NCBI RefSeq assembly: GCF_028641065.1
Contig: NC_073393.1
Coordinates: 21,638,001-21,702,000 of the forward strand
Length of the DNA: 64,000 nt
DNA from: Leucoraja erinacea
Lineage: Eukaryota
Reading direction: 5' to 3'
Of this stretch, positions 923 to 62,300 are shown in pieces (position 1 is the first letter of the stretch; each line of letters opens with the position of its first letter). The position numbers were made by a program, and so were the translations under genes. Under the pieces are notes generated by a model. The model saw only the letters and a program-made list of their open reading frames with translations, made no database searches and had not been told where the DNA came from.

Positions 923-928
923 AATAAA
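923..928 (+). promoter_or_regulatory. Candidate polyadenylation signal of the upstream gene (DYNC1LI2 expected by synteny)
   Basis: AATAAA at the end of an AT/U-rich, repeat-poor stretch, followed by a GT/T-rich tract (gtccttgttttctggtct). Gene identity is inferred only from the human order DYNC1LI2-CMTM4. Confidence 0.35.
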
Positions 929-1619
929 TGTGAATCCACACCCTCTGCTGCACGTCCTTGTTTTCTGGTCTATTAATGAAAGAATGTCACGGAGAATCCA
1001 GTGCACCTAGGAATACTGGTCCCACATCATCTGTGACCATTGCCCACTTGCATGACTGGTTCCCCTGTTGGCACTAGCTGGGAGCTGAAGGATATGGGCA
1101 GGCCTTGCACCCACCTCTACCAAAGAGGAGCATCCTACTGATGCTGGAGGGGAGGGAGACACATTGGATGGAATGCTCCGCGAGAATTGCCACTTTCATT
1201 TCACTGCACATCTCGTATGTGTATGTGACAAATAAACTTGACGACTTGAATAAGCATTATACAAAGGGCAATGTTAATGGAGGGATAAATCACCAGGCCC
1301 AGATAATATACACCAAATTTAAAAAAAAAAAAGCAAAAGAGAAAATTGAGGAGATTATGACTAGCATTGTCCAATTCTTCCTGGTTCCAGAACTGGGGAA
1401 GAGAAAGCAAATGGTTTTAAAGTTACAGAGAGAATGGGGAAGAGATGAATAGGACAAGGTGAAGCTCTCGATTAAGGTGAGGGCAGGATTGCAGTGGGAT
1501 TGTTAAAAATGAAATGGTCATGTTAATGGGGGCAATAGAGAATATGAATGAAATAATATTAAAGCTATAGAAGGAGCAGTTAGAGTGAGAACATATATGT
1601 AAGAGTTTTAAATTCAATG

Positions 1620-1845
1620 TTTGTGGAAGTTGTCAGTGACAGCACATTTTCCATCCCTCAATTGCCCCTGAATTGATGCAAATTTGTGATCAACCAATTT
1701 CCTTCCTTGAAGAACATTGGAGAACGAGATGTTTATTTGCAACAAACCTGCAATTGTAGGATTATCAATTGCTAAGAACTGCATTTTTAAGTTTCCTGGT
1801 ATATTTAATTCCCCAATTTAAGCAAGTTTCAAATTCATCTCATTA
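1620..1845 (-). mobile_element. Old, decayed SINE-like repeat, interrupted by the HE1-like SINE/Tc1 nest (continues ~3746-3800)
   Basis: Resembles the reverse complement of the old repeat at 22670-22830/23160-23248 (ttccatccctcaattgcccct, atttccttccttgaagaac). Confidence 0.4.
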
Positions 1846-1941
1846 GGGCGGCACAGTGTTGCAGCAGTAGAGTTGCTGCCTTACAGCGCCTAAGACCCGG
1901 GTTCAATCCTGATTACGGGTGCTGCCTGTACGGAGTTTATA

Positions 1942-3534: not shown

Positions 3535-4269
3535 TACGTTCTCCCTGTAACCGCGTGGGTTTTCTTCGGGCGATCAGGTTTCCTCCCACACTCAAGACAT
3601 GCGGGTTTGAAGGTTAATTGGCTTTGGTAAATTGGCCCTAGTGTGTAGGATAGTGCTGTTGTACAGGGTGATTGCTGGCTGGTGCAGACTCGGTGGGCCG
3701 AAGGGCCTATTTCCGCACTGTATCTCTTGAACTAAACTAAACTCATCTTACTGAAAAAAAAGGTCTAAAGACCTGGATCATTCCCAGTAATAACTGCCAG
3801 ACTGGAAGTATGTGGGTAGCAACAATTTGCATTGATATAGCAGCTTTGATATGGTGAAGTGTCCTACGGTCTGACACATTACAACAATCAGCGATAAAAA
3901 GGAGTATTTAAGGTGCTGTAGTACTGGGATCTGGTATGGGCTGATGAGTGCATGGTTTATGACTTGGATAAACCTGGTGTGGGTAACAAAATAGACAGCA
4001 GGGCTTTTGGTGACTGTTCTATAGTCAGACTGTTATATTAGATGGAATCACAACCACTAAACAAATAGCCAGATATATGGGATCGCAAGGAACTAAAGAT
4101 GCTAGTTTACCAAAAAAAGTACTGGAGTAGCTCTGGCAGCATCTATGGTCTGACGAAGCATCTTGATCCAAAATGTCACCTATCCATGTTTTGCAGAGAA
4201 GCTGCCTGATCTGCTGAGTTACTCCGGTACTTAGTGACTTTGCATTGATTTGACCACAGTCTTTAGCCA

Positions 4270-4700
4270 CCATCGAAAGCATCTACACCAGGCACTGCCT
4301 CAAGAAGGTGGCATCTATCATCAAGGATCCCCACCATCAGAGCCATGACCTCTTCTCACTGCTACCGTCGAGCAGAAGGTACTTGTCGAGCCTGAAGTCC
4401 CACACCACCAGGTTCAGGAACAGTTACTTTACTACAGCCATCAGGTTTTTGAACCGTCCCACACAACCCTAATCCCACCTCAGCAACGGAACACTACGGA
4501 CCACCTCTTGCACTACCATGGACTTTTTTTCCCAATTGTGTATGTTTCACTAATGTCTTGTTTTTTTGCAGTCTTTTCACTGACGTAGAAGATGTGTATA
4601 ATTTGTTTTTGTGTATTTGAGTCTAAGTGCCTGTGATGCTGCTGCAAGCAAGATATTAATTGTATCTTGTGCAGATGACAAAAAACTTAACTTGACTGAA
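4270..4700 (+). mobile_element. Rex1/Babar-like LINE 3' fragment
   Basis: Translates to an IIKDPHH...LFSLLPSSRRY...RFRNSYF-type C-terminus, followed by a tgacaaaaaac tail. Confidence 0.65.
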
Positions 4701-4899
4701 ACTGAACAAAGATGGGCTGGAGTAACTCAGTGGGTCAGGCAGTACCTCTGGAGAAAAAGGATGGGTGGCGTTTCAGGTCAGGGCCTTTCTGCAGACTCAA
4801 TAACCTAGCGTCAGGTGGGCGCCTGATTTTCTTTTGGTCATTGCAGCTTACCACATTAGCTTGTCCCATGGAGCTTAATTCATCAGGTGTTTGAGCTTA

Positions 4900-6060: not shown

Positions 6061-6559
<499 letters not shown>

Positions 6560-21790: not shown

Positions 21791-22830
21791 GCTTTTCAAA
21801 TGGGGGTATTAGCTACAGGGAGAGATCTACAGGAGAGAATAACATGATTTGTATTTGTCAACTGAGTTCAAATTCTCAAAGAGCATTGGGAGCGTTTATG
21901 TTACCTATTCTTTGGAGCGCAGGAGGCTGAGGGGTGAAGTTTTGGGGATGTATAAAATCATAAGGGGAATAGATAGGGTGAATTCACAAGGATTTTTTCC
22001 AAGAGTTGGGGAACCAAGAACCAATGGACATAGGTGAGTGGGGAAAGATCTAATAGCAACCCACGGTGCAACTTTTTCACCAAGTTGAATGGTTGGGATA
22101 TGGAACGAGCTGCCAGAGGGGGTACGAAGTGCTGGAGTAACTCAGCGGGTTAGGCAGCATCTCTCGAGAAAAAGGGTGGGTAACGTTTCAGGTTGGAACC
22201 CTTCCTCAGACTGGATCCTTTGTACACATTTTGCCAGAGGGGGTAGATGTGGCATGTATTATAACAGCATTTAAAACACTGGGACAGGTTTAGAGGGATA
22301 TATGAGGCAAATGTGGGCAGGTGGGACTAGTTGAGGCAACTTGGTGGGCTTGGCAAGCTGGGCTGATTGTGTGGAGTGTGGCGCCAGGTCTCTTGGTTGG
22401 TGAATCTCCCAAATCTCTGTCCCAGGCGCTGGTGGGGGTTGGATTAGACAATATATTTAAGGTGGAGATAGCTAAATTGTTGACAGATTGAGGAACTGAG
22501 GGCTAGGGGGAACTGGCACAGAATATCAGCCATTATCTAGGGGATGGGCTTGAGTGCCCCACTCCACTTACTGTCCTCCAGACAACAACAGGGAGGCAGT
22601 CGGGCTTGTACAACAGTATGGTAGTTAACACAGTCACTCCATTGTCTGCTCAGGACCATTCATCCAGAGAATCACTTTAATCTCATCACAGCAGCTGGGC
22701 AATTCAAATTCAAGTAAATTAATAAATCCCCCTGTCATTAAAACACACCCTGGTTCAGCGATAACCTTCAGGGAAGTAAATCTTCCGTTCCTGCCTGTAA
22801 GAGTCTGTAAGTAACTCCAGATCCACTATT

Positions 22831-29780: not shown

Positions 29781-31299
29781 CGCTCCTGTCTCCAGCGTGG
29801 CCTATTTACGGGGTGGAGGACGTTTCCCCATCTGCTTTCTGACCTCCCATCGAAGATGAGTGAGGAGTTGTTGGCGTTGCTGTAGCGAGGCTGCTGCATG
29901 TCTGCGCACCTCCCCCGAGGCGGCGCCGTGCAACAGGGGCACCGCCAACGATGCATTACCCGCCGGTGAGCCTCCGGATCTTCAGCTTCGACGCCACCAT
30001 CAAGCGCAGGCACAGTTGCGACGTTGCATTATGCAATGGACTTGGCAACCGTGCCGGCTGCTGCTCTCTGTCAACCTGGCCTCGACTTGCAGAGAGTCCT
30101 GATTTGACCAGGAGCTGCTTGACCCTCTCATCCCCAAACTCCTGAGCCTCACCACATCTCCAGCGGTGTTGCTGGTTATTATTGTCGTGCAGGTTGCTGG
30201 GTGGGCTTGCTCCGCCAACCCCAGTGGAGACCCACAGACGGCTGTGGTGGGGCTTCCATCATCTCCATGCTCACAGATACACACAGAAAGCTGGAGAAAC
30301 TCAGCGGGACATGCAGCATCTCTGGAGAGAAGGTCTTCTCTCCAGAGATGCTACCTGTCCCGCTGGGTTACTCCAGCTTTTTTGGTCTATCTTCGGTTTA
30401 AACCAGCATCTGCAGTTCCTTCCTACACATCTCCACGCTTGCCTTCCCTTCACTGGTTGTCTGAGTGTTGCAATAATGCCCTCAGAGCTGTTAATAGCTG
30501 ACTATTTATTACTAGACAGAGTTACTGAATCAGAATTGTTAATGTATCTGTTCATAAATGTACGAAGACAGTGACTTGCATTTTTTCGAAAGCACCATCA
30601 ACAATTGGTCCCAACATGTTCCAAAGTGCTCTTCAGCCAATGTCAGTGTCAACTTCTAGAGTCACAGTGCTGGACAACTGGGAAACAGAATATGGACATT
30701 ATTGTGTCCATACCGACCGCTGGCATTCTGGGCTAGTCCCATTTATCCTATTTGCATTGGGCCCATACCCCTCTAAACCTTTCCTTTCATTTAGTTTATT
30801 TGCACATGTACCCAGGTATAGTGAAAAGCTTTTTGTTGCGAGCTATCCAGCCAGCAGAAGGACTGTACATGTTTTAAATTTAGATGTACACAGTGTGCAT
30901 ATACAGGATTAGAGGAATAATGTTTAGTGCAAGATAAATTCCAGTAAAGCCCGATTAATGATAGTCCGATCGCAGAGAGGTGGGGTCTGGAACGCGCTGC
31001 CAGGGGTGGTGGTGGAGGTTGATACATCAGTGGCGTTTAAGAGGCTTTTAGATAGACACATGGAAGTGTAGGGAATGAAGGGATAGGGATTACATGCAGG
31101 CAGAGGAGATTAGTTTAACTTGGCATCATGTTTGGCACGGACATTGTGGGCCGAAGGGCCTGTTCTTGTGCTGTACTGTTCTATGTTTGGTGGCTGTGAA
31201 ACAGCTGAGGGAATGCAGTCCTGGGTTGCTGATTCCTACAAGTTTAGAGTTTTGTTCGGCAGCTTTGTCCAAACTTCTGAGAATCAGCGGGTAGGAGAG

Positions 31300-41270: not shown

Positions 41271-41394
41271 CTGTGGACTTCCTGATGGTGGCGGTGTGGG
41301 TGGGCAGCTCCTGTGGGTTGATGAAGATCACCAGCTGGTTGAAGATGCCGTAGAAATCAAAGGCAAAGACAACGGTGGCCACGAACCCAAAGAT
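41271..41394 (-). CDS. CMTM3: CMTM3 coding exon 4
   Basis: ccacAG acceptor; IFGFVATVVFAFDFYGIFNQLVIFINPQELPTHTATIRKST plus 1 nt; donor GTATGG; phase 1. Confidence 0.93.
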
Positions 41395-41703
41395 CTGTGG
41401 AAGTGGGAAGGGTGAAGGGTGAGAGGTGGGTAAGGTAGGGGGACAAGAAGGGAGAGGATGGGGGATGAGAGGGAAGAGGTGGTGGAGAGGACGATCAGGG
41501 AGGAGGCGGATTGGTGAAGAGGAGAGTGGGGAGGGGAGGCACAAGAGGGGGAAGGAGGAGACTAGGTGGGGAGAGGATGGGCAAGTCAGGGAAGGAGTGG
41601 GGAGCCGTGGTGGGAGAGCGTGAGGGGGCGGGAGGGCTGGGGAGGGAGAGTGAGGGGAGGGAGAGTGAGGGGATGGGTGGAACCAGGGAGTAAGGCTACT
41701 CAC

Positions 41704-46575: not shown

Positions 46576-47371
46576 TCCCTTGTCTTGCCCCACCTCTCCT
46601 TTCCAGCTTCCTCCCACTGCTCCATTGTCTGAAGAAGGGTCACAACCCAAAACATCCATTCCCTCCACAGATGCTGCCTAACCCACAAAGTTCCTCCAGC
46701 ACTTTGTGTTTTTTTTCCCAAAGATTCCAGCACCTGCAGTTCCTTGGGTCTCCTAGCATGTGATAGGTAGATATAGGTGAGTAGGGGTGGGGAGTTTGGC
46801 AGGTGGTTGGGTGTGTATAGGGGTAGAGACATAAGGGACTGCAGATGCTGGAATCTTGAGTAAAACATGAAGTGCTGGAGGAACTGAATGGGCCAGGCAT
46901 CAGATGAGGTTAAGAGCGCTGCATGTGAACCTCTGCTCACCTGAAATGACTGCTGGGGCCCCTGGATTGAGCTGAGGAAGGAGGTATAAACTCAGTCTGA
47001 AGAAGGGTTTCTACCTGAAGCGTCACCTATTCCTTTTCTCCAGAGATGCTGCCTGACTCGCTGAGTTACTCCAACTTTTTGTGTCTACTTCCGAGGAGGT
47101 ATAAGGACAGGTGTTACATCTCCTGTGGTTGCAGGGGAAAGTACCTGGGGAAGGTGGGAAGGGATGAGTAAACCAAGGAGTTGTGGAGGGAGCGGTAAAG
47201 CGTGAAAATGAGACAGATTAAGTCGTCAGATAAGGAAAGGAAGAGGAGTGAAATGTAAAGCTGGAGAGAGGGATGTGGGAGCAGTGTAGATCCGTGGACA
47301 CAAGGGGGCTTGGGGAACGGAGTTCTGTAGAACTTCAAACATGCATCTTGAAAATCAGGCATCATTCTTAC

Positions 47372-47424
47372 CAAAGATCCTTTAGCTCGCTATAGGACAA
47401 AGATCCTTTGCTATAGGATCTTTG
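47372..47424. mobile_element. 53-bp palindromic transposon remnant with perfect 8-bp TSD
   Basis: ATTCTTAC|caaagatcctttagc...gctataggatctttg|ATTCTTAC. Confidence 0.8.
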
Positions 47425-47445
47425 ATTCTTACAAGGTCTTACAAC

Positions 47446-47481
47446 GAACGATCTTAGACCTTCTCCGCTCCAGTATCTTTG
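47446..47481. mobile_element. 36-bp degenerate remnant of the same family with perfect 8-bp TSD
   Basis: CTTACAAC|gaacgatcttagaccttctccgctccagtatctttg|CTTACAAC. Confidence 0.6.
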
Positions 47482-47834
47482 CTTACAACAGTCTGAAGAA
47501 GGGCCTCGACCCGAAAAGTCACCCATTCCTTCTCTCCAGAGATGCTGCCTGTCCCGCTGAGTTACTCCAGCATTTTGTGTCTATCCTCGGTGTAAACCCG
47601 CATATGCAGTTCCTTCCTACCTACACATGATTCTTACAAATTCCCCAATTGCTATCCATACAAAAGCTTGCGACCCGTTGCCAAAACAAACAGGAACTCT
47701 GCGATTAACAGAGGGCTGTTTCTTTTGGCACCGTTTGAGCGAAGCTTTAGTTGTCATCGGCGCCGATGCTGTAAGCAGAACGAGGGAATGCGGTGGAGGG
47801 GAGTGCGGATTTGTCAGCGATTGCGGACACTCAC

Positions 47835-47951
47835 CACCTCGGCGGCCAGCAGCAAACCCTTCCGAGAAGTCAAGAAAGCTCTGTCCGCGATTAAAGCGCC
47901 AAGCCCCGGTTGGGACTGGGGACTAGGCTCCGGTGATTCGCACTCGCTCAT
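47835..47951 (-). CDS. CMTM3: CKLF-like MARVEL transmembrane domain containing 3, coding exon 1 of 5
   Basis: Not in the ORF track (39 aa): MSECESPEPSPQSQPGLGALIADRAFLTSRKGLLLAAEV (cf. human GLRALLPARAFLCSLKGRLLLAE). GTGAGT donor. A pyrimidine tract plus AG at 47966-65 suggests an upstream non-coding exon. Confidence 0.93.
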
Positions 47952-49009
47952 CTCCACACTGGTTCTGGGTGATGAGGGGAGGGGAGGAGGGAGAGGGTGA
48001 GGGTGAGCAAAATAAGTTTAAATTGGGGGGGAAATTGGAGCACTTGGGGAAAAAAAAAATACAGAGGGACTTCAGCGGAAAACGGAAACAGTGTGCAGAG
48101 ACTTGGGATGTCCAGTGTAAGGGCTAGAAACAATGGAACTATTACAGCAAAAATACCCAGCAAACAGGAAATTAAAAAAAAAAGCAAGGGGACTGAGTGA
48201 AATCAGCAACAGCTCTGCGTTGTTAAAACCCAATCACCCCTCAGCTCTGCTGAAATTAGTTATTGAAACTTTGCAAATAATTGCAAAACAATATTGTCAG
48301 CGTCTTGGTCATCCTTGACAATGTCTTTGCATTCGAACCTTTGCAAGCAATCGTGAAGTTGCAAACTTTCCAATTTTATAGAACTTAAAACAAGTTTGCA
48401 AAATAAATCAGCTACAACCGCCCCCCCCCCCCCCCCCCCTCTTTATATTAAAAAAAAGCTTGTCGGTAACTTTCAGTATCTTTTGCAAAGTTCTTTTCTA
48501 AAAATAAACTGTACGGAAACTGATGCAAATATATATCTTTTGAGCAAAAACGTGTTGATGGTTTGTATTTCAAGCGCTCCTTTTACAGGGGGTTCCTGAA
48601 TCATGGTGAGATGCCGAATATAAATATCCCAAAGATAGACACAAAGTGCTGGTTTAAGTCAATGGGTCAGGCAGCAACTCAGGAGAACATGAATGGGTGG
48701 TGTTTCGGCTTGAGACCCTTCTTCAGCACGTTATGCCCATCTTTGGTATAAACCAACATATGGTTAGTTTCTATTTTTCTTAGCTTTTAAGTTTCTGCAA
48801 TTTAAATTTTCCATTGAGCTGCCTCAGGTGTAACCTTTAGGGTGGGCACAGAGTTTAGGTGGACACAAGGAACTGCAGGTGCTGGTTTACAAAGACAAAG
48901 CCACAAAGTGCTGGAGCAAATCAGCGGCTCGGGCAGCATCTCTGGAGAACATGGATAGGTGGCGTTTCAGGTTGAGACCCTTCTTTAGACATGGGTCTGA
49001 GGTTTTGGG

Positions 49010-49820
49010 TCTCAAGTATTCAAATGCATCACAGCATGGTTTGGGAACAGCTCCATCCAAACGGCAATAAATTGCAGAGAATTGCCTCCCTTCCATTGAT
49101 TCAGTCTACATTTCACGTTGCCTCGGCATGGCCACCAGCATAATTAAGGACGAGTCTTACCCCGGCATTCCCACTTCTCCCCTCTCCCATCAGGCAAGAG
49201 GTAGAGAAGTGTGAAAGCACACATCTCCAGATTCTGGAACAGTTTCTTACTAGCTGTTAACATAGAAACATAGAAAATAGGTGCAGGAGGAGGCCATTCG
49301 GCCCTTCGAGCCAGCACCGCCATTCATTGTGGTCATGGCTGATCGTCCCCTATCAATAACCCGTGCCTGCCTTCTCCCCATATCCCTTGACTCCACTAGC
49401 CCCTAGAGCTCTATCTAACTCTCTCTTAAATCCATCCAATGACTTGGCCTCCACTGCCCTCTGTGGCAGGGAATTCCATACATTCAAAACTCTCTGGGTG
49501 AAAAAGTTTTTTCTCACCTCAGCCTTAAATGACCTCCCCTTTATTCTGTTATCAGGCAACTGAACCATCATCCTATCACCAACTAGAGAGCAGTCCTGAG
49601 CTACCATCCATCTCATTGAAGACCCTCGTACTATCTTTAATAAAACGTTACCGGACTTTATCTTGCACTAAATGTTATTCCCTTTATCATGTATCTGTAC
49701 ACTGTGGACGGCTCGATTGTAATCATATATAGTCTGTCCGCTGACTGGATAGAATGCAACAAAACGCTTTTCGCTGTACCTTGGTACACGTGACACTAAA
49801 CTAAACTAAACCAAACTAAA
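49010..49820. mobile_element. Rex1/Babar-like 3' fragment (+) with a young CR1 3' end (-, ~49260-49545) inserted
   Basis: ctgtta is duplicated at 49254-59 and 49546-51. The CR1 reads FFTQRVLNVWNSLP. Confidence 0.83.
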
Positions 49821-50394
49821 TTACCTCTGGCCAGTATTTGCAAGATTTGCAGAGTTGCAGAGTTGATGGATTTCAAAAACAAACTCGCTAACACGCTTCC
49901 TGTGTTATTCTGTCTAATTTTCTCATTTTTGTAGTACTGAGGTGTGATGATTTGAGTCAATGAGTCACACAGAAGGGCATTTGGCCCATCAAGTTTCTAC
50001 TACTTCTATTAAGACCCCAATCCTACCCAAACTCAGTTTATGTCCCCCATCCCCCCCATAGTAGGTCGATACAGTGATGCAGCAGGTATATCCGCTGCCT
50101 CACAGCGCTGGACACCCGGGTTCCAACCTGACCTTGTGTGCCTTTTGTCTGTGTGGTGTTTGCACATTCTCCTTGTGACCGTATGAGTTTCCTCCGGGTG
50201 CTCCGGTTTCCTCCTACATCCCAATTTACAGCACCAACAGCCAATAATCTTTTAGAGTCCTAGTACCATACAGTACGGAAACAGGCCCTTCAACCTATCT
50301 TGCTCATGATGGTCAATATGCCCTATCTAAGCAAGTCCCACCTGCCTGCATTTGGCCCATATTCTTCTTAACCATACCTATCCTTTCCTATCGT

Positions 50395-50833
50395 TCAAGT
50401 TCAAGTTAGTTTATTGTCATGTGTCCCTGATAGGACAATGAAATTCTTGCTTTGCTTCAGCACACAGAACATAGTAGGCATTTACTACAAAACAGATCAA
50501 TGTGTCCATATACTATAATATAAATATACACACACATGAATAAATAAAATGATAAAGTGCAAATAATAGATAATTGGTTATTAATTATCAAAGTTTTGTC
50601 CGGGTCAGGTTTAATAGCCTGATGGCTGTGGGGAAGTAGCTATTCCTGAACCTGGTTGTTGCAGTCTTCAGGCTCCTGTACCTTCTACCTGAAGGTAGCA
50701 GGGAGTTGAGTGTGTGGCCAGGATGGTGTGGGTCGTTGATGATACTGCCAGCCTTTTTGAGGCAGCGACTGCGATAGATCCCCTTGATGGAAGGAAGGTC
50801 AGAGCCGATGATGGACTGGGCAGTGTTTACCAT
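50395..50833 (-). mobile_element. Rex1/Babar-like LINE 3' end
   Basis: AQSIIGSDLPSI...RCLKKAGSIINDPHHPGHTLNSLLPSGRRYRSLKTATTRFRNSYFPTAIRLLN, then a tgacaataaa tail. Confidence 0.85.
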
Positions 50834-51029
50834 TAGTCATTGGAGACCCTCGGACTATCATTAATCAGACTTTGCTGGACGTTATCACATACTAAATGTT
50901 ATTCCCTTTATCCTGCATTTATACAGTGTCAACGCTTGATTGTAATCATGTATAATCTTTCCACTGACTGGTTAGCATGCAACAAAAGCTTTTCACTGTT
51001 CCTCGGCACACGTGACACTAAACTAAACT

Positions 51030-51570
51030 ATCCGTGTAGCTATCCAAATGTCTCTCAAATGGTGTTATACTACTTTCTCTGGCAGCTTGTTCCATATATA
51101 CCCTCTGTGTAAGAAAGCTGCCCCACAGCTTCCTATTTAATCTTTCCCCTCTCACCTTAATGCTGTGCCCTCTATTTCTGGATTCCCCCACTGGTAGTAA
51201 AAAACACTGGGCATTCACTCTATCTATTCCCCTCATGATTGTATGCGCCTCTATAAGATCACACCTCAGCCTCTTACATTGAGGGGGTGGGGGGGAGAAC
51301 CAAGGAGGGCCTGCTGTAGGATACATTGTAACTTTGTCACTGCCCTTTATGTGGCCACTCTTTGCATACCTTTGTTGTGCAAAACAAAGTATATTGCTGT
51401 GACTCGACAATAAAGCATCATTCATTTCAATAAATAAAGTCCTAACCTGCCCAACCTCCCTCTGTGGCTCAGGCCCTCGTGTCCTGATAAATTTTCCATG
51501 TACTTTTTCTCTAAACCCTTTCCAGCTTAATAACATCCATCCCACAGCAAGGTGACCAAAACTGAACATG
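51030..51570 (-). mobile_element. CR1 LINE 3' fragment
   Basis: RLRCDLIEAHTIMRGIDRV...NRGHSIKVRG. Confidence 0.8.
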
Positions 51571-51989
51571 ATGAAGCAATGAGCAAAAAAACGTAAAGTG
51601 CTGGAGTAACTCAGCGAGTCAGGCAGCACTTCTGGAGAACATGGATAGGCCACGTTTCGGGTCAGGACCCTTCTTCAAACTGCCCGACCCAGTTTCTCCA
51701 GCACTTTGTGTTTTTTTGCACAAGATCCCAGCATCTGCAGTTCCTTGTGAAAGCAATGAACATGTTTAAAAATGTTTATTCAATTTGGATCAAATGCCAA
51801 GAATAAGTAATGTATAAATACAAATACCGCGAAATGGCATGATACAGGAAACTGGGCAGAAAGTGGACAGAGCAGAAGGGAAAAATATTCCATCTGTTTC
51901 CTCAAAAAGGAGCTCTGCATTTTACGCAGGTTTAACTCTTCATGGTAACTGCTGCCACTTCAAATGCAGTGCTGGCAAATACAATGTTA

Positions 51990-52380
51990 AGGGCCTGTCC
52001 CACTATCGTGACCGTTATAGGCGACTGCTGGCACCCGTGATGGGTCGCCGAAATTTTCAACATGTTGAATATTCAGCGGCGACCAAAAAGACTCTGGTGA
52101 CCTCTCACGGCCACAGGAGACCTCTTACGACCATACAGGCTGTACGGTTGTGAGACGTTTCCTACGGTCATGAGAGGTCACCCGCGACATGTCGCCAGGG
52201 GTCTCCTATGATCGTGAGAGGTCTCCTATGGTTGTGAGAGGTCTCCTATGGTCTTGAGAGGTCTCCAAAGAGTTGTAGCGACTTTCTGGTCGCAGCTGAT
52301 TTTTCAATGTTGAAAATTTTGGTGACCTATCATGGGTGCTGGCAGTCGACTGTAAAGGTCACGTAAGTGGGACAGGCCCT
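51990..52380. mobile_element. PIF/Harbinger-like MITE (391 bp) with an internal 20-bp tandem repeat
   Basis: TTA|AGGGCCTGTCCCACT...AGTGGGACAGGCCCT|TTA. Arms pair imperfectly over ~100 bp; gagaggtctcctatggttgt units inside. Confidence 0.85.
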
Positions 52381-52767
52381 TTAGTTTTCATTTTGAGGGG
52401 ATTAGAATATAATAGAATCCGAGGAGGGATATACTGGTGTTGAAGAGTGGAACATGGGATGTTGTCTTTGGGAAGTGGGAGGAAAGCAGAGCATCCGGAG
52501 GAAACGCACGCGATATAGTCACAGGGAGAACAAGCAAACTCCACACAGACAGCACCACAGGTCAGGTGCTCTTACTTCCAGGAAGGACACTGCCTTCTTG
52601 GGAAGATCAGTGGCGGGAATAGAGGCAACCTTCGCCCATCCAGGGCAGACCAAAGCCAGTATTCAAGGGATTCATGTTCCTACGCTGACCAGCCCCTCCT
52701 GTGGGGTGAGGAGGGTCGGCTGCCGGCTCAAAGGTCAAGCCCTCACCGGGGGCACCAGGGCAAGGAT

Positions 52768-53090
52768 GGCACGGTGGCGCAGCAGTAGAGTTGCTGCCTC
52801 ACAGTGCCAGAGACCCAGGTTCGATCCTGACCTAGGGTGCTGTCTGTATGGAGTTTGCATGTTCTCCCTGTGACGGGTGTGGGTCTTCTCCCAGAGCTCC
52901 GGTTTGCTCCCACATTCCACAGACGTGCAGGTTTGCATGTTAATTGGCTTCTGTACATTGTCCTTAGTGTGTAGGATAGAACTAGTGTATGGGTGATCGC
53001 TGATCAGCATGGACTTAGTGGGCCGAAGGGTCTGTTTCCACGCTGTATCTCTAAACTAAACTAAACTAAACTAAACTAAACTAAACTAAA
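52768..53090 (+). mobile_element. HE1-like V-SINE, full length, with (CTAAA)8 tail
   Basis: A box (tggcgcagcagtag), B box (ggttcgatcc), V domain and tail. Confidence 0.92.
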
Positions 53091-53314
53091 CGAAACAAGC
53101 CCCATGAGCTCCTCCAGTGCATTGTACGCCCTCTCAAGGCACCAGTATACACGGGTTAATGTTCAGAATCTATCTCCCAATCAATATCACTAAGTAATCA
53201 TCTTACGATCTTCACATTGCTGCAGGTGGATTTGCTAGAACACGTAAAACAGGCTCAGGACTCCTTCAAGTCAAGTCAAGTTTATTATCGTTTGTACAAG
53301 TGCGAGGAGGTGCA

Positions 53315-53610
53315 GTTTAGTTTAGCGATACAGTGTGGAAACAGGACCTTCGGCCCACCAAGTCCATGCCGACCAACGATCACCCATGCATTAGCACGAT
53401 CCTACACACTAGGGACAATTTTACAGAAGCCAATTAACCTAAAAACCTGCACATCTTTGGAATGTGGGAGGAAAACAGAGCACCCGGAGATAGTCCACGC
53501 GGTCACAGTGAGAACGTGTGAAGACGGCACAGACAGCAGCCGAGGTCAGGATCGAAGTCATGTCTCTGGTGCTGTGAGGCAGCAACTCTACCGCTGCGGC
53601 TTGGTGCTGC
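53315..53610 (-). mobile_element. HE1-like V-SINE inserted in the tail of a Rex1-like element (~53270-54150)
   Basis: Consensus SINE. The host matches the copy at ~11370-11600. Confidence 0.85.
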
Positions 53611-55189
53611 CTCAATTGTGCCGTGCCATTGCAGGTACAATGAAAATATTACTTGCAGCAGTATCACAGGCACATAGGCTCAGACAACACACAAAAAACA
53701 TAAATTATACATACATTCTAACGACAGAAAAAATAAAAATATCGTGTAAAAAAATAAGACATTAGTGGAAATGAATAACAAAATCAAGTCCACTGTAGTG
53801 GAAGAGGTGCGTAGTGTTCCGTTGCTGAGGTGGGATTAGGGTTGTGCGGGTCGGTTCAAGAACCTGATGGTTGGAGTGAAGTCGCTCGTTCCTGAATCTG
53901 GCGGTGTGGGGCTTCAGGCTCCTGTACCTCCTGCCCGACACAGTAGCGGTGAGGAGAGGGCACAGCCCGGATGGTGGGGATCCGTGATCATACTTGACGC
54001 AGCGCCCGGTGTAGAGACTTTAGATGGTGAGAAAGGCGATGCCCGTGATGGACTGGGCTGAGTCCACCCCTCTCTGCAGCCTCTTGCAATCCTGTGCTTT
54101 GGAATTGCCAAACCAAGTCATGATGCAATCAGGCAGGATACTTTCTGGTGTTTAAGATGGAACTGCAGATGCTGGAAAATCGAAGGTACACAATATTTCC
54201 TTCGCTCCGTAGATGCTGCTGCACCCGCTGAGTTTCTCCAGCATTTTTGTGTACCTAGGATACTTTCTGGAATGCTTTGTCGGGGTTTGTTAGAGCACTC
54301 AGTAATATGCCATATCTCTTCACATGATTGCAGCAAACCCTTGGAAAAATGGACCATGGGAAGAGGGGGATGGTGTCCGTAATTGCCAATTGACCGCTAT
54401 AACCGAGTGAGGGGGAAAAATTTAATCCAAGGCCGGGAGGGAAGCGTGCTCATCCAGTCAGTGGAAAGACTATGCATGATTACAGTCAAACAGTCCACCA
54501 TGTACAGATAAGTGATAAATGGTGCAACATTTAGTATATATTAAGTCTGATAAAGACCAATTAAAGATAGTTCAAAGATTCCCAGTGAGGTGGGTGGGAG
54601 TTGAGGACGGCTCTCTAGCTGACGAGAGGACTGTACAGTTGCCTGATAACAGCTGTGAAGAAGCTGTCCTCAAATCTGGAATATTTCCTCACCCAAGTTT
54701 GTCCTACCACAAGTTTAGCTCTGCTGCAAGTTAACATGTGCTTTATAGCTTTGCAAACTGATTAGTTTAGGCTTCTGTTTATTATTGTTACGAGGTATAT
54801 AGTTGATCCCTGGGACACCTCACTATTTACAGATAGCTTATTCAAAATTGTCCCACTGATCCCAGCACTCTGTTTTTGGTTAGTTACCCACTTCCATATC
54901 AAATGCAATTTACATTTCCCACCCCTGCCATCATACTGGATATGGAATGGCTGCCCTGTTATTGTCCTTTGCATTGCAACAATGACTGCACCCCGGTAGT
55001 AACTCGCAGGACCAGCGACATGAAAATCCATGTACCAAATATTACTGATTATTACTTTACTGTATGATTATTGTATATTTATTTGTGCAGTATTGTGTTG
55101 GTGGGCCTGTTAAGCTGCAGCAAGTAAGAATGTAATTGTTCCGTTGCTGGTACATATGACAATTAAATACTCTTGAACTTTGCGTCAAT

Positions 55190-55490
55190 AACACAGTGGT
55201 GCAGCGTTAGAGTTGTTGTCTAACAGCGCCAGAGACTCGCCTTCGATCCTGTCCTTGGGTGCTGTCAGTATGAGGTTGCACGTTCTCACTGTGACCACAT
55301 GGGTTTTCTCTGGGTGCTCCGGTTTCCTCTCACATCCCAAATACATGCAAATGGTTGGTAGATTCATTTGCTTAGGTAAAATTGGCCCTAATGTGTAGGT
55401 TAGAACTAGAGCATGGCTGATTGTGGTTGGCATGGACTCGGTGGGCCAAAGGGCCTGTTTTCACACTGCATTTCTAAATCTAAAACTAAT
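55190..55490 (+). mobile_element. HE1-like V-SINE
   Basis: Head, V domain and tail. Confidence 0.87.
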
Positions 55491-55515
55491 GACAAAATAA
55501 GAATTTGGCGATTGT

Positions 55516-55521
55516 TTTATT
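55516..55521 (-). promoter_or_regulatory. Candidate CKLF polyadenylation signal (an alternative distal AATAAA lies at 51775-51780)
   Basis: AATAAA on the minus strand ~670 nt after the stop, with a T-rich tract downstream. Confidence 0.45.
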
Positions 55522-56192
55522 GAAGCTGCAACATGTTTACAGTGTATACCCAAGTTACGTCAGTGTGGCTGACTGGAAATTCCCCATTACCAAATTCACA
55601 AATGACTCACAAAAAATTTAAATTTCCAACATAAAAATGAATTCCTATGGAATTTAATTAATAAAAAAAGCAAGAATAGTGAGAGAAACAACAACTCGTG
55701 TCATTTCTATTTCCCCCTTGCACCTACATTCCTTCCTCGTATCTTCACAATTTGCAACTATTCAATCCTTTTGTCTCGCACCTTCTGCTTTACATCTGTG
55801 GCTTTTGTCCAATCATCAGCCGATCAAAAAAACGTCCTCACCTGTACCAACCCTATTATGTGGCAGGTAATTTAGAGGGACATGGGCCAAATGCGGGCAG
55901 GTGGGATAAGTATAGATGGGGCATCTTGGTCGGCATGGATGAGTTGGGCCGAAGGGCCTGTTTCCTTGCTGTATGACTCTACAACTCGATGAATGCTGTT
56001 CTGATAACGTTCGATGAGAGGCTTTACTTCATGTTGAGGTGGTAAAGCACGCGCCCATCGTCAATTCCAAGGAGGCCCAAGAGAAGATCACAGAAAGTTT
56101 CAGAAATGCAGTGATGAGTTGAGCGTGGTGTAGAAGGGGCTGAAGGTCCATCAGGAGATGAGTCAGAAGGTCACGTTACTGGACACGCGTGA

Positions 56193-56297
56193 CTATCTGG
56201 CTGGTACGCTTGTGGCCTTTGTTTGGTTGAATGTTATGAGGCTGAATATTACGTACGTGTCAACTGCGTAGACTACGACTCCGAGGAACCCAAAGAC
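56193..56297 (-). CDS. CKLF: CKLF coding exon 4 (stop TAG); protein 142 aa
   Basis: ttttatctccAG acceptor; VFGFLGVVVYAVDTYVIFSLITFNQTKATSVPAR* (fourth MARVEL helix). Not in the ORF track. Confidence 0.88.
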   Translation of the reverse strand, partial: VFGFLGVVVYAVDTYVIFSLITFNQTKATSVPAR

Positions 56298-56519
56298 CTG
56301 GAGATAAAATTAGACAGAAGATGGTTAGCATCTAGAAAGACTCAGAGCCTTCGTTATTCTCAGCCCTAAGGTCTTCTCAAGCTGACAACTCTCCAACGCT
56401 GAACATAGAACAGTCCAACACAAGGCCAGCCCCTTTGGCCCAGAGTGTCCATGCTGACCAAGATCAAGATCAAGATACAATTTATTTGTCATTCACCATT
56501 AAGCCAATTTAAACTAATT

Positions 56520-56815
56520 AGTTTGGTTTGTTTAGAAATAGAGCATGGAAACATGCCCTCTTGCCCACCAAGTCCGCACCGACCAAAGATCACACTAGTT
56601 CTATCCTACACACAAAGGACAATTTACAGAAGCCAATTAACTACAAGTCCGTACGTCTTTGGGGCATTGGAGGAAACCAGAGCACCTGGAGAAAACCCAT
56701 GTGGTCACGGGAGAATGTACAAACACGGTGCAGATAGCTCATGTAGTCATGAACCAACCCGGGTCTCTGGTGCTGCGAGGCAGCAGCTCTACCCGCTGCG
56801 TCACCGTGCCACCCA
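56520..56815 (-). mobile_element. HE1-like V-SINE
   Basis: Reverse complement of the consensus. Confidence 0.85.
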
Positions 56816-56942
56816 CCAGGCGACCGGGCTTAGAGGGAGAGGTGCGAGTGAGAAGGTGAGAGGACAGGATGGGAGGTCCAGTGGTCAGTTCCACCAGAGG
56901 AAGTCAGTCACGCTGGGAGAGCACATCCCCACCCACACTCAC

Positions 56943-57038
56943 CGAGCCGGTGATGATTCCCGCTGTGGTCCTGAGGACAACGGCCGCGATACAAATAACC
57001 AGCAGGAACAGGGCCGCAAACGCTGAGTTCACAGAGTC
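56943..57038 (-). CDS. CKLF: CKLF coding exon 3
   Basis: ttttcAG acceptor; DSVNSAFAALFLLVICIAAVVLRTTAGIITGS (96 nt); GTGAGT donor. Confidence 0.9.
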
Positions 57039-57229
57039 CTGAAAAACAGACACAATTTTCAAATAAATTAATCTGTTTTTCTTCTCAAGGTGAGGCCTGT
57101 TTATCCCTGAAGCACAAAGACCTTCTAGTAGGAAGTTTCTGCATCGCACACTCCAGGAAAGCTACATCATGTTCTCTCTACATACCCCCATCACACACTC
57201 CTGGGGACAGGCACAGAGTGAAGCTCCCT

Positions 57230-57565
57230 CTACATACTCCCAGGGTCAGGGGTCAGACACACTACCATGGTCAGGGGTCAGACACACTCCCAGGGTCAGG
57301 ATCAGGGGTCATACACACTCTCAGGGTCAGGGGTCAGACACACTCCCAGGGTCAGGATCAGGGGTCATACTCTCAGGGTCAGGGGTCAGACACACTCCCA
57401 GGGTCAGGGATCAGACACACTCCCAGGGTCAGGGATCAGACACACTCCCAGGGTCAGGGGTCAGACACACTCCCAGGGTCAGGGGTCAGACACACTCCCA
57501 GGGTCAGGTTCAGGGGTCAGACACACTCTCAGGGTCAGGGGTCAGACACATTCCCAGGGTCAGAC
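57230..57565. repeat. 25/31-bp minisatellite, ~13 units, CKLF intron 2
   Basis: Unit cagacacactcccagggtcaggggt; some units carry an extra ggatca or ggttca. Confidence 0.97.
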
Positions 57566-57772
57566 AGAGTAAAGCTGCCTCTACATATTCCCATCACACC
57601 TTCAAAGATCAGGTATGGAATTGGTAAACCACAATTATCTTCATTCATCTCACATGTCCAACGTTCCCAACCCTGTCCTTCCACCGCCCCACCGGATGTT
57701 TCTCACGACGCGATCTCCCTTTAGTCGGGTCTCGGGCAGCTCGCCCCATTGGGCTGGAGTGCTCGCGCTTAC

Positions 57773-57931
57773 CATCAGCGGCCAGAAGAGCTGGGTTATC
57801 TTGGAGTCGAGCTTGAGCAGATACAGGAGGTAGAAGGCCAGCGTGATGAAGATCTCCATGAGTGGAACGGCCAGGAAGGCCCCAGAGAATGATGAAGCAG
57901 CAAAGCAGACAAAAACCACAAAGGCCACAAC
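57773..57931 (-). CDS. CKLF: CKLF coding exon 2
   Basis: ttcaaAG acceptor; VVAFVVFVCFAASS...LLYLLKLDSKITQLFWPLM (159 nt; cf. human LLYVLRLDRLMKWLFWPLL); GTAAGC donor. Confidence 0.9.
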
Positions 57932-58384
57932 CTTTGAATATAAACACAAACACAAGAACATAAAGCCCTTGGTAAAGCACACTGGTCTCCCAATATCCCC
58001 GTTGCTCTCCTCCATAAGACTGTAAGACACATATGAGACGAGTTTTGACCTGAAACTTCACCCATTCCTGCTCTCCAGAGATGCCTCCTATCCCACTTAC
58101 TCCAGCATTTTTTTAAATCTATCTTAGACATATATGAAACCATAAGACATTAATCATGTATAGTATTTTTGCTGACTGGATAGCATGCAACAAAAAAACG
58201 TTTAACGCTCCCTCAGTACACCTGACAATAAGCTAACCTGTAGGAGCAGTATTAGGCCATTCGGACCATCAAGTCTACTCCACAATGAAATCATGGCAGA
58301 TCTATTCTTCTCTCTCAACCACATTCTCCAGCCTTCTCCCTATAACCTTTGATACCTTTGAGGAACAAAAGATCAAAGGGTCCT

Positions 58385-58417
<33 letters not shown>

Positions 58418-58859
58418 GGGGGGGGGGGGGGGGGGGGGAGGGGGGAATAGAGGAGGAGTCAGCATGCTTTGTAACTTTGTCAGTGCCATAGGTGGCTGCT
58501 GTTTGTATACATTGGGTTTACAAGCTAAGAATTTCACTGTGCCTAGTCACATGTGACAATAAAGTTATCCATAAAGTATTCTATTCAATTCTTTCCTAAT
58601 CATGACTTCCTCTCTGGGATGACCTCCCCCAACAATGTCTACACCCGACAAAGCATCCTATCAGGATGTATCGCAGCTTGGTTTGGGAACAGCTCTGCCT
58701 AAGACCACCAGAAATTGCAGAGTTGTGGACGTAGCCCAGTCCATCACGCAGACCAGACTCACCCACCATCGACTCTATTGTAATCATGTATTGTCCTTCC
58801 ACTTTTCACTGCACCTCGGTACACATGGCAATAAATTAAACTCAAATCTACAATTGGCT

Positions 58860-59265
58860 TTCCAAATGTGTCCTAAATGTTGTTATAGTACCTGCCTCAA
58901 CTCCTTCTCTCGCAGCTCAGTCCATATACCCACCACCCTATGGGTGAAACATGTTTCCCCACAGGTTCCTATTAAATCTTGCCCCTCTCACCTTAAACCA
59001 ATGTCCTCTGGTTCTTGATGCCCCTGCTCTGGGTAAAAGTCTCTGTGCATTTCCCCCCCTATATATTCCACTCATGATCTTATCCACCTCCATAAGATCA
59101 CCCCTCAGTCTTCAGCACTCCAAGGAATAAAGTACAAGCCTGCGCAATTTCTCCCTATAGCCCAGGCCCTCGATTCCTGGCACCATCCTTGTAAATCTTC
59201 TCTGCACCCCTTCCAACTCAGTGGCTTCTTTCCTATAGCAGGGTGACCAAAACTGAACACAACAC
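58860..59265 (-). mobile_element. CR1 LINE 3' fragment
   Basis: cctccataagatcacccctcag and cagggtgaccaaaactgaacaca motifs, as in the other CR1 copies. Confidence 0.8.
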
Positions 59266-59482
59266 TTGTTTAGTTAGGGCTGTGATGTGGTGAGAAGGGG
59301 TTGAAACAGGCAGAGGTGCGGGCTTGGATGAGGCAAAACACAAAAGGAGTTGACAAAGTTTGATAAGAAGGAACCTTATGACCTGGTGAACTGCAGATGC
59401 TGGTTTATACCAAAGATAGACACAAAGTGTTGGGGTAACTCAGCGGGTCAGGCAGCATCAGAAAATGAAGACACATTAAAAG

Positions 59483-59510
59483 CAAAGATCTTATAGCTAT
59501 AAGATCTTTG
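59483..59510. mobile_element. 28-bp perfect palindrome with perfect 8-bp TSD (transposon remnant)
   Basis: ATTAAAAG|caaagatcttatagctataagatctttg|ATTAAAAG. Confidence 0.85.
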
Positions 59511-60506
59511 ATTAAAAGATAAAGGGAATTGCAAATTGATTGAGACTGGATAAAAATGATTGATACCTTTCCCTGAGGCACACAGGATTTTACGACAAGG
59601 CAGTGACTTGACAACATGGTTACCCAGACTGTAGAAACCAAAGATCTTAGAGCGAAGAAACAAGGAACTGCTTATGCTGGTTTACCAATTATATATAGTA
59701 AGTGCTGGAGTAACTCAGAGGTTCAGGCAGCGTCTCTGGAGAAGACGGATAGGTGATTTTTCGGCTCAGGACTCTTCTTCATACTGAGTCTGAAGACCTG
59801 GTTACTCCTGCACTTTGTGTTTATCTTTGGTGTTAACAAAGTTATTGTAGAATACGTATTTAAAGTAATCTATGGCGTGCAGCTGTTTGCCATGTGATGC
59901 AAACGGTAGAGACCAAGAGTTTATGTAGGAAGTCTGTATAAACAAACGCAAGTACCTAATATTACCAAGCTTCAGTAGACACGCCCAATTAGAACCAACA
60001 GCCAAAAAAAATGAAGAAGCCCTACATGTACACAATGTCAGTGCAGTCACCGTCTGACTCAGTGACCCCACACTTCTGACTCAGTGACCCCACACAACCC
60101 CCCACTCACGCCCTGTTTTGTTGCTGTTTTGAAAACTTCACATCCCGGTGATTCTTCCCTCTGCACTCCCTCTCTCCACACCACTAACACCCCCCTCCCC
60201 TCCCCTCCCCTCCCCTCCCCTCCACTGGACCCCCCTCTCTCCTGAGTCTGAAGAAGGGTTTCGGCCCGAAACGTCGCCTATTTCCTCCGCTCCATAGATG
60301 CTGCTGCATCCGCTGAGTTTCTCCAGCAATTTTGTGTACCCCCTCTCTCCAACTCGTCTTTTCCTCTCCCTCTCCAACCCTTTATTTTCTCTTCCCCCTG
60401 CTCTCTCCACCCCTTTCTCTCACTCTTCCCCTGTCCCTCTCTGTCTCTCTCTCTCTTTTTCTCTCCGCCCCCCCCTCTCTCTCTCTCCCCATTCACTCTC
60501 TCTCAC

Positions 60507-60575
60507 CATCTCCAGAATCTTCAGCACACTCCGTTTGGATTTCACAAACGGGAAATTGACCTCTATGTCAGGCAT
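60507..60575 (-). CDS. CKLF: Chemokine-like factor (MARVEL protein), coding exon 1 of 4
   Basis: aacATG start; MPDIEVNFPFVKSKRSVLKILEM has the MARVEL F.xS.xxxLK motif; GTGAGA donor. Named CKLF from its position upstream of CMTM3 and its 159/96-nt internal exons. Confidence 0.85.
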
Positions 60576-60626
60576 GTTCTTGCTGTTTTCAGAGCGGTTC
60601 TGTATAGGGCAATCTGCAGTTCTTCG

Positions 60627-60650
60627 CAAAGATCCTATATAGGATCTTTG
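60627..60650. mobile_element. 24-bp perfect palindrome with 7/8 TSD (transposon remnant) 52 bp upstream of the CKLF ATG
   Basis: GTTCTTCG|caaagatcctatataggatctttg|GTTGTTCG. Confidence 0.8.
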
Positions 60651-61404
60651 GTTGTTCGGGCTGAAACACTTCCTGAAATCTTTCTTGGCCAGCCCCGACC
60701 ACCTCCTGTTGTAACAGCCAATCTCTCTGTGTCTGCCTTTGATTGATGCATCAACGTTAGTTAGTTACATTTTCTATGTAACTAACCGGGTTCTCCAGCT
60801 CTCTCCCCCAGGGGGCAGTAACAGGGGGGAAATACTTTAATTTCCTTCAACCCATTCACTTTATATCCTCTCACTCTAGAATGGTCACCAAAATAAACAG
60901 AAGAATTAGAATAACTAGCTGTAATCTATCGATTGTATGACATTGTTTCATTCATGTCGAGGCATGCAGCTTAGTGCAATGTATCCGGCTCAGACATTTC
61001 CGTCAGTCAGGCTTTTAAAAAGTCACAAACTTTCGTTTTCTCAGTTTTAGATAGAAAGGAGTTGGCAAGAGAGTCAAGAGTGTTTTATTGTCCTTTTTTA
61101 CCGGAACAGAACAATGGGCAAGTCTGAAGAAGGGTCTTGACCCGAAATGTCACCCATTCCTTCTACCCAGAGATGCTGCCGGTCCCACTGAGTTACTCCA
61201 TTTTGTGTTTATCTTCAGCATTCTTACTTGCAACAGCAATACAAAAGGGTTATGAACATAGTACCTAATAGATAATATAATAAACAAAACAAAACGTTCA
61301 ATACATAAAAGTTAAGTTCATTTTATTGTCACGTGCACAGCGAAAAGCTTTTTTTGTTAGGTAGTCAGTAAGACGACGATACATGAATACAATGAAGCCG
61401 TCAA

Positions 61405-62300
61405 GCAACAAGGGCAGAGTCCCCCAGGTCCTCACCTTTCACCCCACCAGCCGGCAAATACAACACATAATCCTCCGCCATTTCCGCCACCTCCAACGTG
61501 ACCCCACCATTCGCCACATCTTCCCATCTCCCCCCATGTCTGCCTTCCGCAAAGACCGCTCCCTCCGCAACTCCCTTGTCAATTCTTCCCTTCCCTCCCG
61601 TACCACCCCCTCCCCGGGCACTTTCCGTTGCAAACGCAAGAAATGCAACACCTGTCCCTTCACCTCCCCCCTCGATTCCATTCAAGGTCCCAAGCAGTCG
61701 TTCCAGGTGCGACAAAGGTACACCTGTATCTCCTCCAACCTCATCTACTACATCCGCTGCTCTAGATGTCAGCTGATTTACATTGGGGAGACTAAGCGGC
61801 GGTTGGGCGATCCTTTCACCGAACACCTCCGCTCAGTCCACAATAACCTACCTGAACTCCCGGTAGCTCAGCACTTCAACTCCCCCTCCCATTCCCAATC
61901 CGACCTCTCTGTCCTGGGTCTCCTCCATTGCCAGAGTGAGCAACACCAGAAATTGGAGGAACAGCACCTCATATTCCGCCTGGGCAGCTTGCATCCTGAT
62001 GGCATGAATGTTGAATTCTCCCAATTTTGCTAGCCCTTGCTGTCTCCTCCCCTTCCTTAACCCTCGAGCTGTCTCCTCCCATCCCCCCTGCCCTCGGGCT
62101 CCTCCTCCTGCCCTTTTTCCTTCCTTCTCCCCTCCCACCCCCCATCAGTCTGAAGAAGGGTTTCGGCCTGAAACGTCACCTATTTTCTTCACTCCATAGA
62201 TGCTGCTGCACCCGCTGAGTTTCTCCAGCAATTTTGTGTACCTTCGATCTTCCAGCATCTGCAGTTCCTTCTTGAACACGACAACCAATCTATAATCTTT
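61405..62300 (+). mobile_element. Penelope-like retroelement, 5' truncated: GIY-YIG endonuclease end, 3' UTR and hammerhead motif
   Basis: CKRKKCNTC linker and NLIYYIRCSRCQLIYIGETKRRL...EH...VAQHF...GMN; stop at 62033. CTGAAGA...GAAACGTC at 62150-62177. gccgtcaa is repeated at both ends. Confidence 0.9.

Follow-up and report, generated by a model that had tools for sequence, protein, structure and literature searches.

What leaves behind a series of short palindromic inserts, most of them enclosed by an 8-bp duplication of their own, beside the first coding exons of two MARVEL-family genes? The question is raised by a 64,000-nucleotide stretch of the Leucoraja erinacea genome (RefSeq assembly GCF_028641065.1, contig NC_073393.1, positions 21,638,001 to 21,702,000 of the forward strand), which was analysed as a whole, is called the window here, and supplies the numbering used for all positions. 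An earlier note, made from the letters alone, had described four inserts with shared ends and 8-bp duplications (three perfect and one matching at 7 of 8 positions) together with a lone left end, and had taken them for fossil excision scars of a P/THAP9-type transposon family. The sequence confirms the four inserts, which we name E1, E2, E3 and E4, in their positions, their shared ends and their duplications, while the lone left end makes a fifth, one-sided member. On balance we consider these palindromes to be, rather probably, end-joined donor-site scars of a transposon that left by a P-type cut. The inserts and their flanks are listed below, the lone end being the only one to which a strand is assigned.

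47364..47371: left target duplication of E1, ATTCTTAC, the left member of the 8-bp pair.
47372..47424: E1, 53 bp; a putative outer scar of 32 bp (15 nt of left arm and 17 nt of right arm) with a nest inside it.
47390..47397: left copy of the nested duplication, CTATAGGA, inside the right arm of the outer scar.
47398..47410: putative nested scar, CAAAGATCCTTTG, 13 bp; 12 nt of left arm and 5 nt of right arm, with CTTT common to both.
47411..47418: right copy of the nested duplication, CTATAGGA, a perfect match to the left copy.
47425..47432: right target duplication of E1, ATTCTTAC, a perfect match to the left copy.
47438..47445: left target duplication of E2, CTTACAAC, the left member of the 8-bp pair.
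47446..47481: E2, 36 bp, with degenerate arms, readable as 17 + 2 + 17.
47482..47489: right target duplication of E2, CTTACAAC; its final base is the first base of an abundant repeat resembling a short interspersed element (SINE).
59475..59482: left target duplication of E3, ATTAAAAG, the left member of the 8-bp pair.
59483..59510: E3, a 28-bp perfect palindrome whose arms join in GC at repeat positions 14-15.
59511..59518: right target duplication of E3, ATTAAAAG, a perfect match to the left copy.
59631..59638: left flank of the one-sided insert, GTAGAAAC, the 8 nt before the lone end.
59639..59655, plus strand: putative one-sided scar (the lone left end), 17 nt of left arm with one mismatch at position 12 and no right arm.
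59656..59661: AGAAAC after the lone end, matching the final 6 nt that a right duplication copy would have here.
60619..60626: left target duplication of E4, GTTCTTCG, the left member of the 8-bp pair.
60627..60650: E4, a 24-bp perfect palindrome whose arms join in TA at repeat positions 12-13.
60651..60658: right target duplication of E4, GTTGTTCG, a 7/8 match to the left copy.

E1, E3 and E4 all start with CAAAGATC and finish with GATCTTTG, and E2 departs from these ends by two letters on each side. The ends are thus shared, and the lengths are those of no single fixed-length family, running through 13, 17, 24, 28, 32 (53 with the nest) and 36 bp within the window. The longest arms measure 17 nt, as seen in the right arm of E1, in the lone end and in E2 when this is divided as above, and no arm in the window is longer than 17 nt. 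The inserts share an architecture in which a duplication is followed by up to 17 nt of left repeat, by 0-2 nt or copied filler, by up to 17 nt of right repeat and by the second duplication copy. Since the stubs of both repeats vary while the 8-bp duplications around them are intact, the inserts look like scars rather than like a miniature inverted-repeat transposable element (MITE) of fixed length.

The duplications themselves are well preserved, with four of the five complete pairs perfect (E1, its nest, E2 and E3) and the fifth, that of E4, matching at 7 of 8 positions, while the right side of the lone end retains 6 of the 8 nt. All six flanking duplications, which lie in AT-rich sites, carry T at position 2, an outcome expected about 3 times in 10,000 for a base at roughly a quarter frequency, and four of the six carry A at position 7. 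This positional bias argues that they are genuine target duplications produced by an enzyme with a target preference.

Two of the members called for a revised description. E1 had been put forward as one 53-bp element, and its coordinates hold, but it does not appear to be single: as the motif-free scan described below brought out, a 32-bp outer insert, whose 15 and 17 letters meet with no filler, encloses a second, 13-bp one, the 32 bp being what is left once the inner piece and one CTATAGGA copy are taken away. The exact 8-bp repeat around this inner piece, the T at position 2 of that repeat and the exact termini together favour a second insertion into the first. The lone left end begins at 59639, as previously described, and its end moves from 59654 to 59655, where 17 nt of repeat give way to AGAAAC. 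The arm lengths in both descriptions depend on the repeat sequence beyond position 15, which was obtained from the metagenome contigs considered below, independently of the window; it is this sequence that makes the outer part of E1 a product of 15 + 17 letters and the lone end exactly 17 nt long. E2 and the lone end have G at position 12 in common. Between E1 and E2, at 47427-47445, lies a further pair, TCTTACAA / GG / TCTTACAA, with C at position 2, interpretable either as a third duplication around a 2-nt remnant or as pre-existing sequence.

How might such inserts have arisen? A cut-and-paste transposon with ends CAAAGATCYTWTAGCGA would have inserted repeatedly near the 5' ends of two MARVEL-family genes, each insertion creating an 8-bp target duplication, and would later have been excised. 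During excision, its transposase would have made staggered cuts, opening one strand where element and flank meet and the other a good way into the inverted repeat. In the window the stagger would amount to about 17 nt, the value also known for the Drosophila P element, and both flanks would have retained a 3' single-stranded tail of repeat sequence. Because the two tails would be identical in sequence, they could pair only at small self-complementary spots (GATC, TATA, TA and GC), and host end joining would be expected to leave short, variable and mostly palindromic stubs between the duplication copies, with one tail sometimes trimmed off or extra copied letters added. Joining at each self-complementary spot of the repeat would be expected to give products of 12, 20, 22, 24, 28 and 30 bp. 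Two of these lengths, 24 (E4) and 28 (E3), are found in the window, and 22 and 28 are found in contigs from other sequencing runs. We infer the staggered cut from the anatomy of the inserts, the limit on arm length and the positions of the junctions.

The closest parallel is provided by excision of P elements in flies, where the tails are known. Drosophila P transposase is described as severing the 3' strand at the end of the element but the 5' strand 17 nt within the repeat, which leaves 17-nt non-complementary 3' tails on the donor DNA (PMC7776569, PMC10983969). In the P{wa} assay such 17-nt 3' tails are joined by classical or polymerase-theta end joining, and the recovered junctions keep both 8-bp duplications, which enclose as many as 17 letters of either repeat (PMC2895639 Tables 1-3). 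The commonest joins fall at AT or TA near the tail tips, accompanied by asymmetric microhomology joins, by loss of one tail and by copied filler of up to tens of letters (PMC2895639). By our matching, every class of junction in the window has a counterpart among those of P{wa}: the 2-nt palindromic microhomology joins correspond to E4 (TA) and E3 (GC); the asymmetric microhomology join to the nested 13-bp insert, with its 12 + 5 letters and CTTT overlap; one-tail loss to the lone end, which has also lost 2 nt of its duplication; and the filler-containing joins to E2. The variable fused stubs and these P{wa}-like junctions uphold that part of the original proposal which saw excision scars. Its other part, membership of the P/THAP9 superfamily, is plausible, being read from cut geometry alone as a cleavage signature.

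Related sequence in other organisms was sought in contigs of runs X16, X3, X10 and X12, which were aligned to 58801-61300 at 85% likeness and stand for four of the six organism labels listed by the run search. One X16 contig of 293 letters covers 59436-59729 with 2 differences and 1 gap, and its span indicates that the X16 organism has both E3 and the lone end. An X3 contig of 668 letters covers 60495-61146 with 15 differences and 5 gaps, which likewise places E4 in the X3 organism. An X12 contig of 237 letters aligns to 59511-59683 (11 differences, 7 gaps), which places the lone end in an organism differing by about 6-7% as well. The alignment of this contig ends at 59511, the first base 3' of E3, and leaves 71 letters unaligned; there may be a different state at the E3 site. 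At the centre of E4, contigs two letters shorter (a 22-bp form) occur in all four runs, whereas 28-bp forms occur with TAGC added in three of the four and with AGCG added in two. The 22-, 24- and 28-bp versions are probably other loci with the same ends and different centres. Across the four runs, summed contig depth, which is no copy number, was 23-337 in the E4 bin as against 16-169 in the next bin, and 89-4727 in the E3 bin as against 9-49.

More distant material was reached by a 15-mer pattern scan, which returned at least 117 metagenome loci and 104 viral-contig loci. These matches are mostly chance: among the matches listed, 15 of 223 continue with GA, equal to the chance expectation, and the family can be recognised in metagenome contigs only by paired inverted ends. 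Seven animal contigs among the matches listed nevertheless carry the scar ends (L015, L033, L034, L045, L053 and L094, one handle, and L026, neighbouring). Both ends are present in inverted orientation in five of them, 30, 30, 51, 51 and 45 bp apart; in a sixth the element is cut by the contig end, and the seventh has a single end 290 bp upstream of the first exon of a dynamin gene. Some of these stubs adjoin a first exon or a splice donor, and L034 carries dynamin exons. L045 and L094 represent the same locus in two copies, 78-84% identical, which both retain the 51-bp stub. The stub contigs have no other similarity to the window, and no transposase was found in them among the matches listed.

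Several observations weigh against reading the inserts as P-type excision scars. The sample is about six scars. No long copy was seen in the window, either as paired ends up to 6 kb apart or as single ends with up to 3 mismatches, and no transposase is thereby tied to the scar ends. Autonomous elements of the P superfamily code for a THAP-domain, RNase-H-fold transposase with a GTP-binding insertion domain, those of the hAT superfamily for one with a BED finger, a DDE domain and a hAT C-terminal dimerisation domain. The tip of the repeat and the duplication motif fit hAT transposons as well as P. The earlier note had looked to orthologous sites for a decision; comparison across the four runs showed the stubs of E3, E4 and the lone end to be shared, and among the joints listed it yielded neither an empty site nor a full-element site in relatives. 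Within the window, the inner piece of E1 might be filler that was copied in, and not a further insertion, and the arms of E2 are about 30% off consensus despite a perfect duplication. Simple ageing does not account for this divergence, which could reflect error-prone filler synthesis or a different subfamily. In the metagenome stub contigs, clear 8-bp duplications are not evident, and four independent arms share CAAAGATCCTATAGCGACC, which is 19 nt long rather than 17. The arm limit may therefore not be exactly 17, or the metagenome copies may have another history or have been lengthened by short repair synthesis.

The 19-nt arms, set against the 17 nt of Drosophila P, also lend something to the suggestion that the inserts are indeed long-stagger scars, made by a non-P superfamily that creates 8-bp duplications and whose cleavage chemistry is unstudied. 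Scar anatomy reveals the geometry of a cut and not the family of the enzyme, which leaves room for such a source. Among the cleavage work cited here a long stagger is documented for P alone (PMC10983969, PMC7776569, PMC5499845), and we regard such a non-P source as unlikely.

A second explanation accepts a hAT family and supposes that repair of its excision gaps, with the sister chromatid as template, was broken off and gave rise to derivatives with extreme internal deletions. The CAAAG tip counts in its favour, as it fits YARNG, which we take to be the hAT end consensus, although it presumably fits the end consensus of P as well. The 8-bp duplications are of the NTNNNNAN type, the motif reported for Hermes (PMC2803484) and, as GTNCGNAC/NTNNNNAN, for hobo (PMC3276498 Table 4), and in flies repair synthesis commonly stops short and is completed by end joining (PMC2895639). 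The combination of T and A at positions 2 and 7 was considered as a mark of hAT and dropped, since the P element motif, GTCCGGAC, has the same bases (PMC3276498 Table 4); with these positions common to hobo, Hermes and P, the duplication motif cannot separate hAT from P. The duplication length is 8 for P and 7 for 1360 (PMC3276498), and the 8 bp of the skate inserts agree with this range of 7-8 bp in the P superfamily. In cleavage by hAT, Transib, Mutator and RAG enzymes the hairpin forms on the flanking DNA, with no repeat sequence remaining there (PMC5499845; PMC1978519), so that hAT footprints consist of altered duplication copies devoid of repeat. Copying tracts would moreover predict a broad spread of end lengths, whereas the arms in the window end at 17 nt and no paired ends with a duplication lie 54-6000 bp apart in it. 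We therefore hold gap repair in a hAT family to be improbable.

A third explanation treats the palindromes as mobile in their own right. In this form, 22-32 bp micro-MITEs, recognised by a transposase that needs no more than the outer 11-16 nt of the ends, would be primary insertions, and elements of this size would be seeding promoters in skates as well as in one or more further animal lineages. Each copy does have its own 8-bp duplication, and the same few forms (22, 24 and 28 bp) recur in four organism labels at a summed depth well above that of neighbouring unique sequence. These recurrent lengths are, however, the ones predicted by microhomology joining, and the summed depth is not to be read as a count of copies. 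Within the window, lengths run from 13 to 53 bp. The right arm is absent from one member and amounts to 5 nt in another, which would make recognition at both ends impossible for them. Drosophila P transposase requires internal binding sites beyond the repeat, a further point against self-mobile palindromes. If mobile, elements of 22-32 bp would be, to our knowledge, the shortest mobile DNA known. Both the micro-MITE explanation of the window and the wider notion of promoter-seeding micro-transposons seem doubtful to us.

The excision-scar reading presupposes that the family is real, and this was addressed by several controls on the window. An 11-mer end motif with up to 1 mismatch has 14 matches where 6.06 are expected, a number reached in 0 of 100 shuffles, and all eight exact matches fall at the sites reported here. 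A 15-letter motif, allowed as many as 3 mismatches, is found 17 times (6.07 expected; 0 of 100 shuffles). Among 44 left-like and 42 right-like 8-mers, the pairs lying 12-6000 bp apart with an 8-bp flank repeat (up to 1 mismatch) are those of E1, E3 and E4 only; E2 is missed because its ends have 2 mismatches. A motif-free scan, in which any segment of 12-120 bp was accepted if its ends were inverted and a perfect 8-bp repeat flanked it, gave 3 hits, each from this scar family, and when applied to 200 first-order Markov simulations it gave a mean of 0.035 and a maximum of 1, with any hit at all in 7 of the 200. Although short AT-rich palindromes are common, and one weak candidate (48486-48534) occurs at the level of the simulations, the idea that the inserts are chance palindromes or local replication-error palindromes unrelated to transposition is very hard to sustain against ends of 15-17 nt common to six places, each with a different 8-bp duplication, against the excess of motif-free hits and against the finding of the same ends in unrelated contigs.

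Three further matches were set aside. The candidate at 48486-48534 (49 bp) has perfect ATCTTTTG copies, a poor left arm and no right arm, and is probably chance, sitting at a false-positive level of 0.5 per simulated window. A weak match at 22043-22057 lies inside another repeat, and one at 41388-41399 has no duplication.

Where, then, do the inserts lie with respect to genes? A protein search with one open reading frame of the window identified a 142-residue Leucoraja erinacea CKLF-like MARVEL protein (P0002), which tblastn places exon by exon on the minus strand; its later exons are 91-97% identical over the full aligned spans, which overrun the exon ends by a few residues. A second, CMTM-like first coding exon is suggested by a sequence motif and by the parallel between its end and that of the first CKLF-like exon. 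The two exons are as follows.

60504-60575, minus strand: first coding exon of the CKLF-like MARVEL gene; P0002 residues 1-24, 100% identical.
47835..47951, minus strand: putative first coding exon of the CMTM-like gene, with its start codon (ATG) at 47951 and a GTGAGT donor from 47834.

With the second exon read from sequence in this way, the distance between an insert and the first coding exon, CKLF-like or CMTM-like, is 52-994 bp throughout, in agreement with the limit of about 1.1 kb given before. E4 is 52 bp upstream of the CKLF-like ATG, the lone end and E3 are 849 bp and 994 bp into CKLF-like intron 1, and E1 and E2 are 353-462 bp inside the putative CMTM-like intron 1. A third CMTM-like first-exon motif near 6341 (plus strand) has no scar nearby; with it, the MARVEL-family genes of the window form a cluster.

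The flanks of E1/E2, E3 and the lone end adjoin the SINE-like repeat, which begins CAGTCTGAAGAAGGG; the insertion points are outside it, and no insert lies inside a copy. This repeat is very abundant, occurring at 47489-47640, 59388-59459, 59662-59786, 61121-61216 and about 40 further places, with 39-44 blast hits per flank query in the window, and it forms a head-to-head inverted pair at 30275-30392 with 2 nt between the arms. Its copies were considered as a source of paralogous empty sites and rejected, as no paralogue supplies one. Pfam searches with seven open reading frames gave weak MARVEL and GIY-YIG matches only. The GIY-YIG match (E 0.058) belongs to a 216-residue frame at 61383-62033 (plus strand), a domain found in Penelope-like retroelements. 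At 57169-57724 (plus strand), three overlapping open reading frames reflect a repeated GQGSDTLPGSGVRHTPRVR-like unit, a tandem repeat in the CKLF-like intron between exons 2 and 3.

If the inserts are excision scars, the skate genome holds a readable record of the past sites of a transposon, sites of departure that are normally invisible because repeat annotation passes over inserts of 13-50 bp. The long-staggered cut, biochemically known only for Drosophila P, would then operate in a family resident in vertebrates, the cut-off in arm length would provide a measure of the cut offset from sequence data only, and insertions would have occurred repeatedly at the same few bases beside first exons. 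The palindromes left in promoters and first introns may affect regulation, E4 being 52 bp upstream of a start codon. Searches of the open-access literature turned up no account of P-type excision scars fixed in the genome of a vertebrate, nor any of this family; scars of the same form are known from Drosophila P excision.

Compared with known systems, the inserts resemble MITEs, including P- and hAT-derived ones, in being non-coding, with inverted ends, flanking duplications and perhaps many copies. Known MITEs have a family-typical length of tens to hundreds of base pairs, whereas the skate inserts, of 13-53 bp, have no typical length and some lack one end. They have in common with hAT elements a location near genes, local re-insertion and 8-bp duplications in which position 2 is T and position 7 is A. 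They show the NTNNNNAN duplication preference but no hairpin-type footprint, and they differ from the footprints of Ac/Ds, hobo and Hermes in consisting of repeat sequence. Zebrafish Pdre2 / zfTHAP9 is a vertebrate cut-and-paste system with short terminal inverted repeats starting with CA and with 8-bp duplications, much as in the skate; its 13-bp repeat, CATACCTGTCAAC, shows no similarity to the skate repeat beyond the CA (PMC10983969). P-element insertions prefer the 5' regions of genes (PMC7776569), and the skate scars likewise lie near gene 5' ends. The Drosophila P repeat, CATGATGAAATAACATA, is unrelated to the skate repeat CAAAGATCYTWTAGCGA, and the P target motif, GTCCGGAC, is palindromic and GC-rich where the skate sites are AT-rich, its GT..AC frame being found in hobo also. 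The skate family differs further from Drosophila P in being known from scars alone and in having arms that reach 19 nt in its metagenome copies. Finally, whereas the P{wa} junctions were recovered from an assay, the skate scars would be their counterparts as fixed germline fossils, some of them common to several organism labels.

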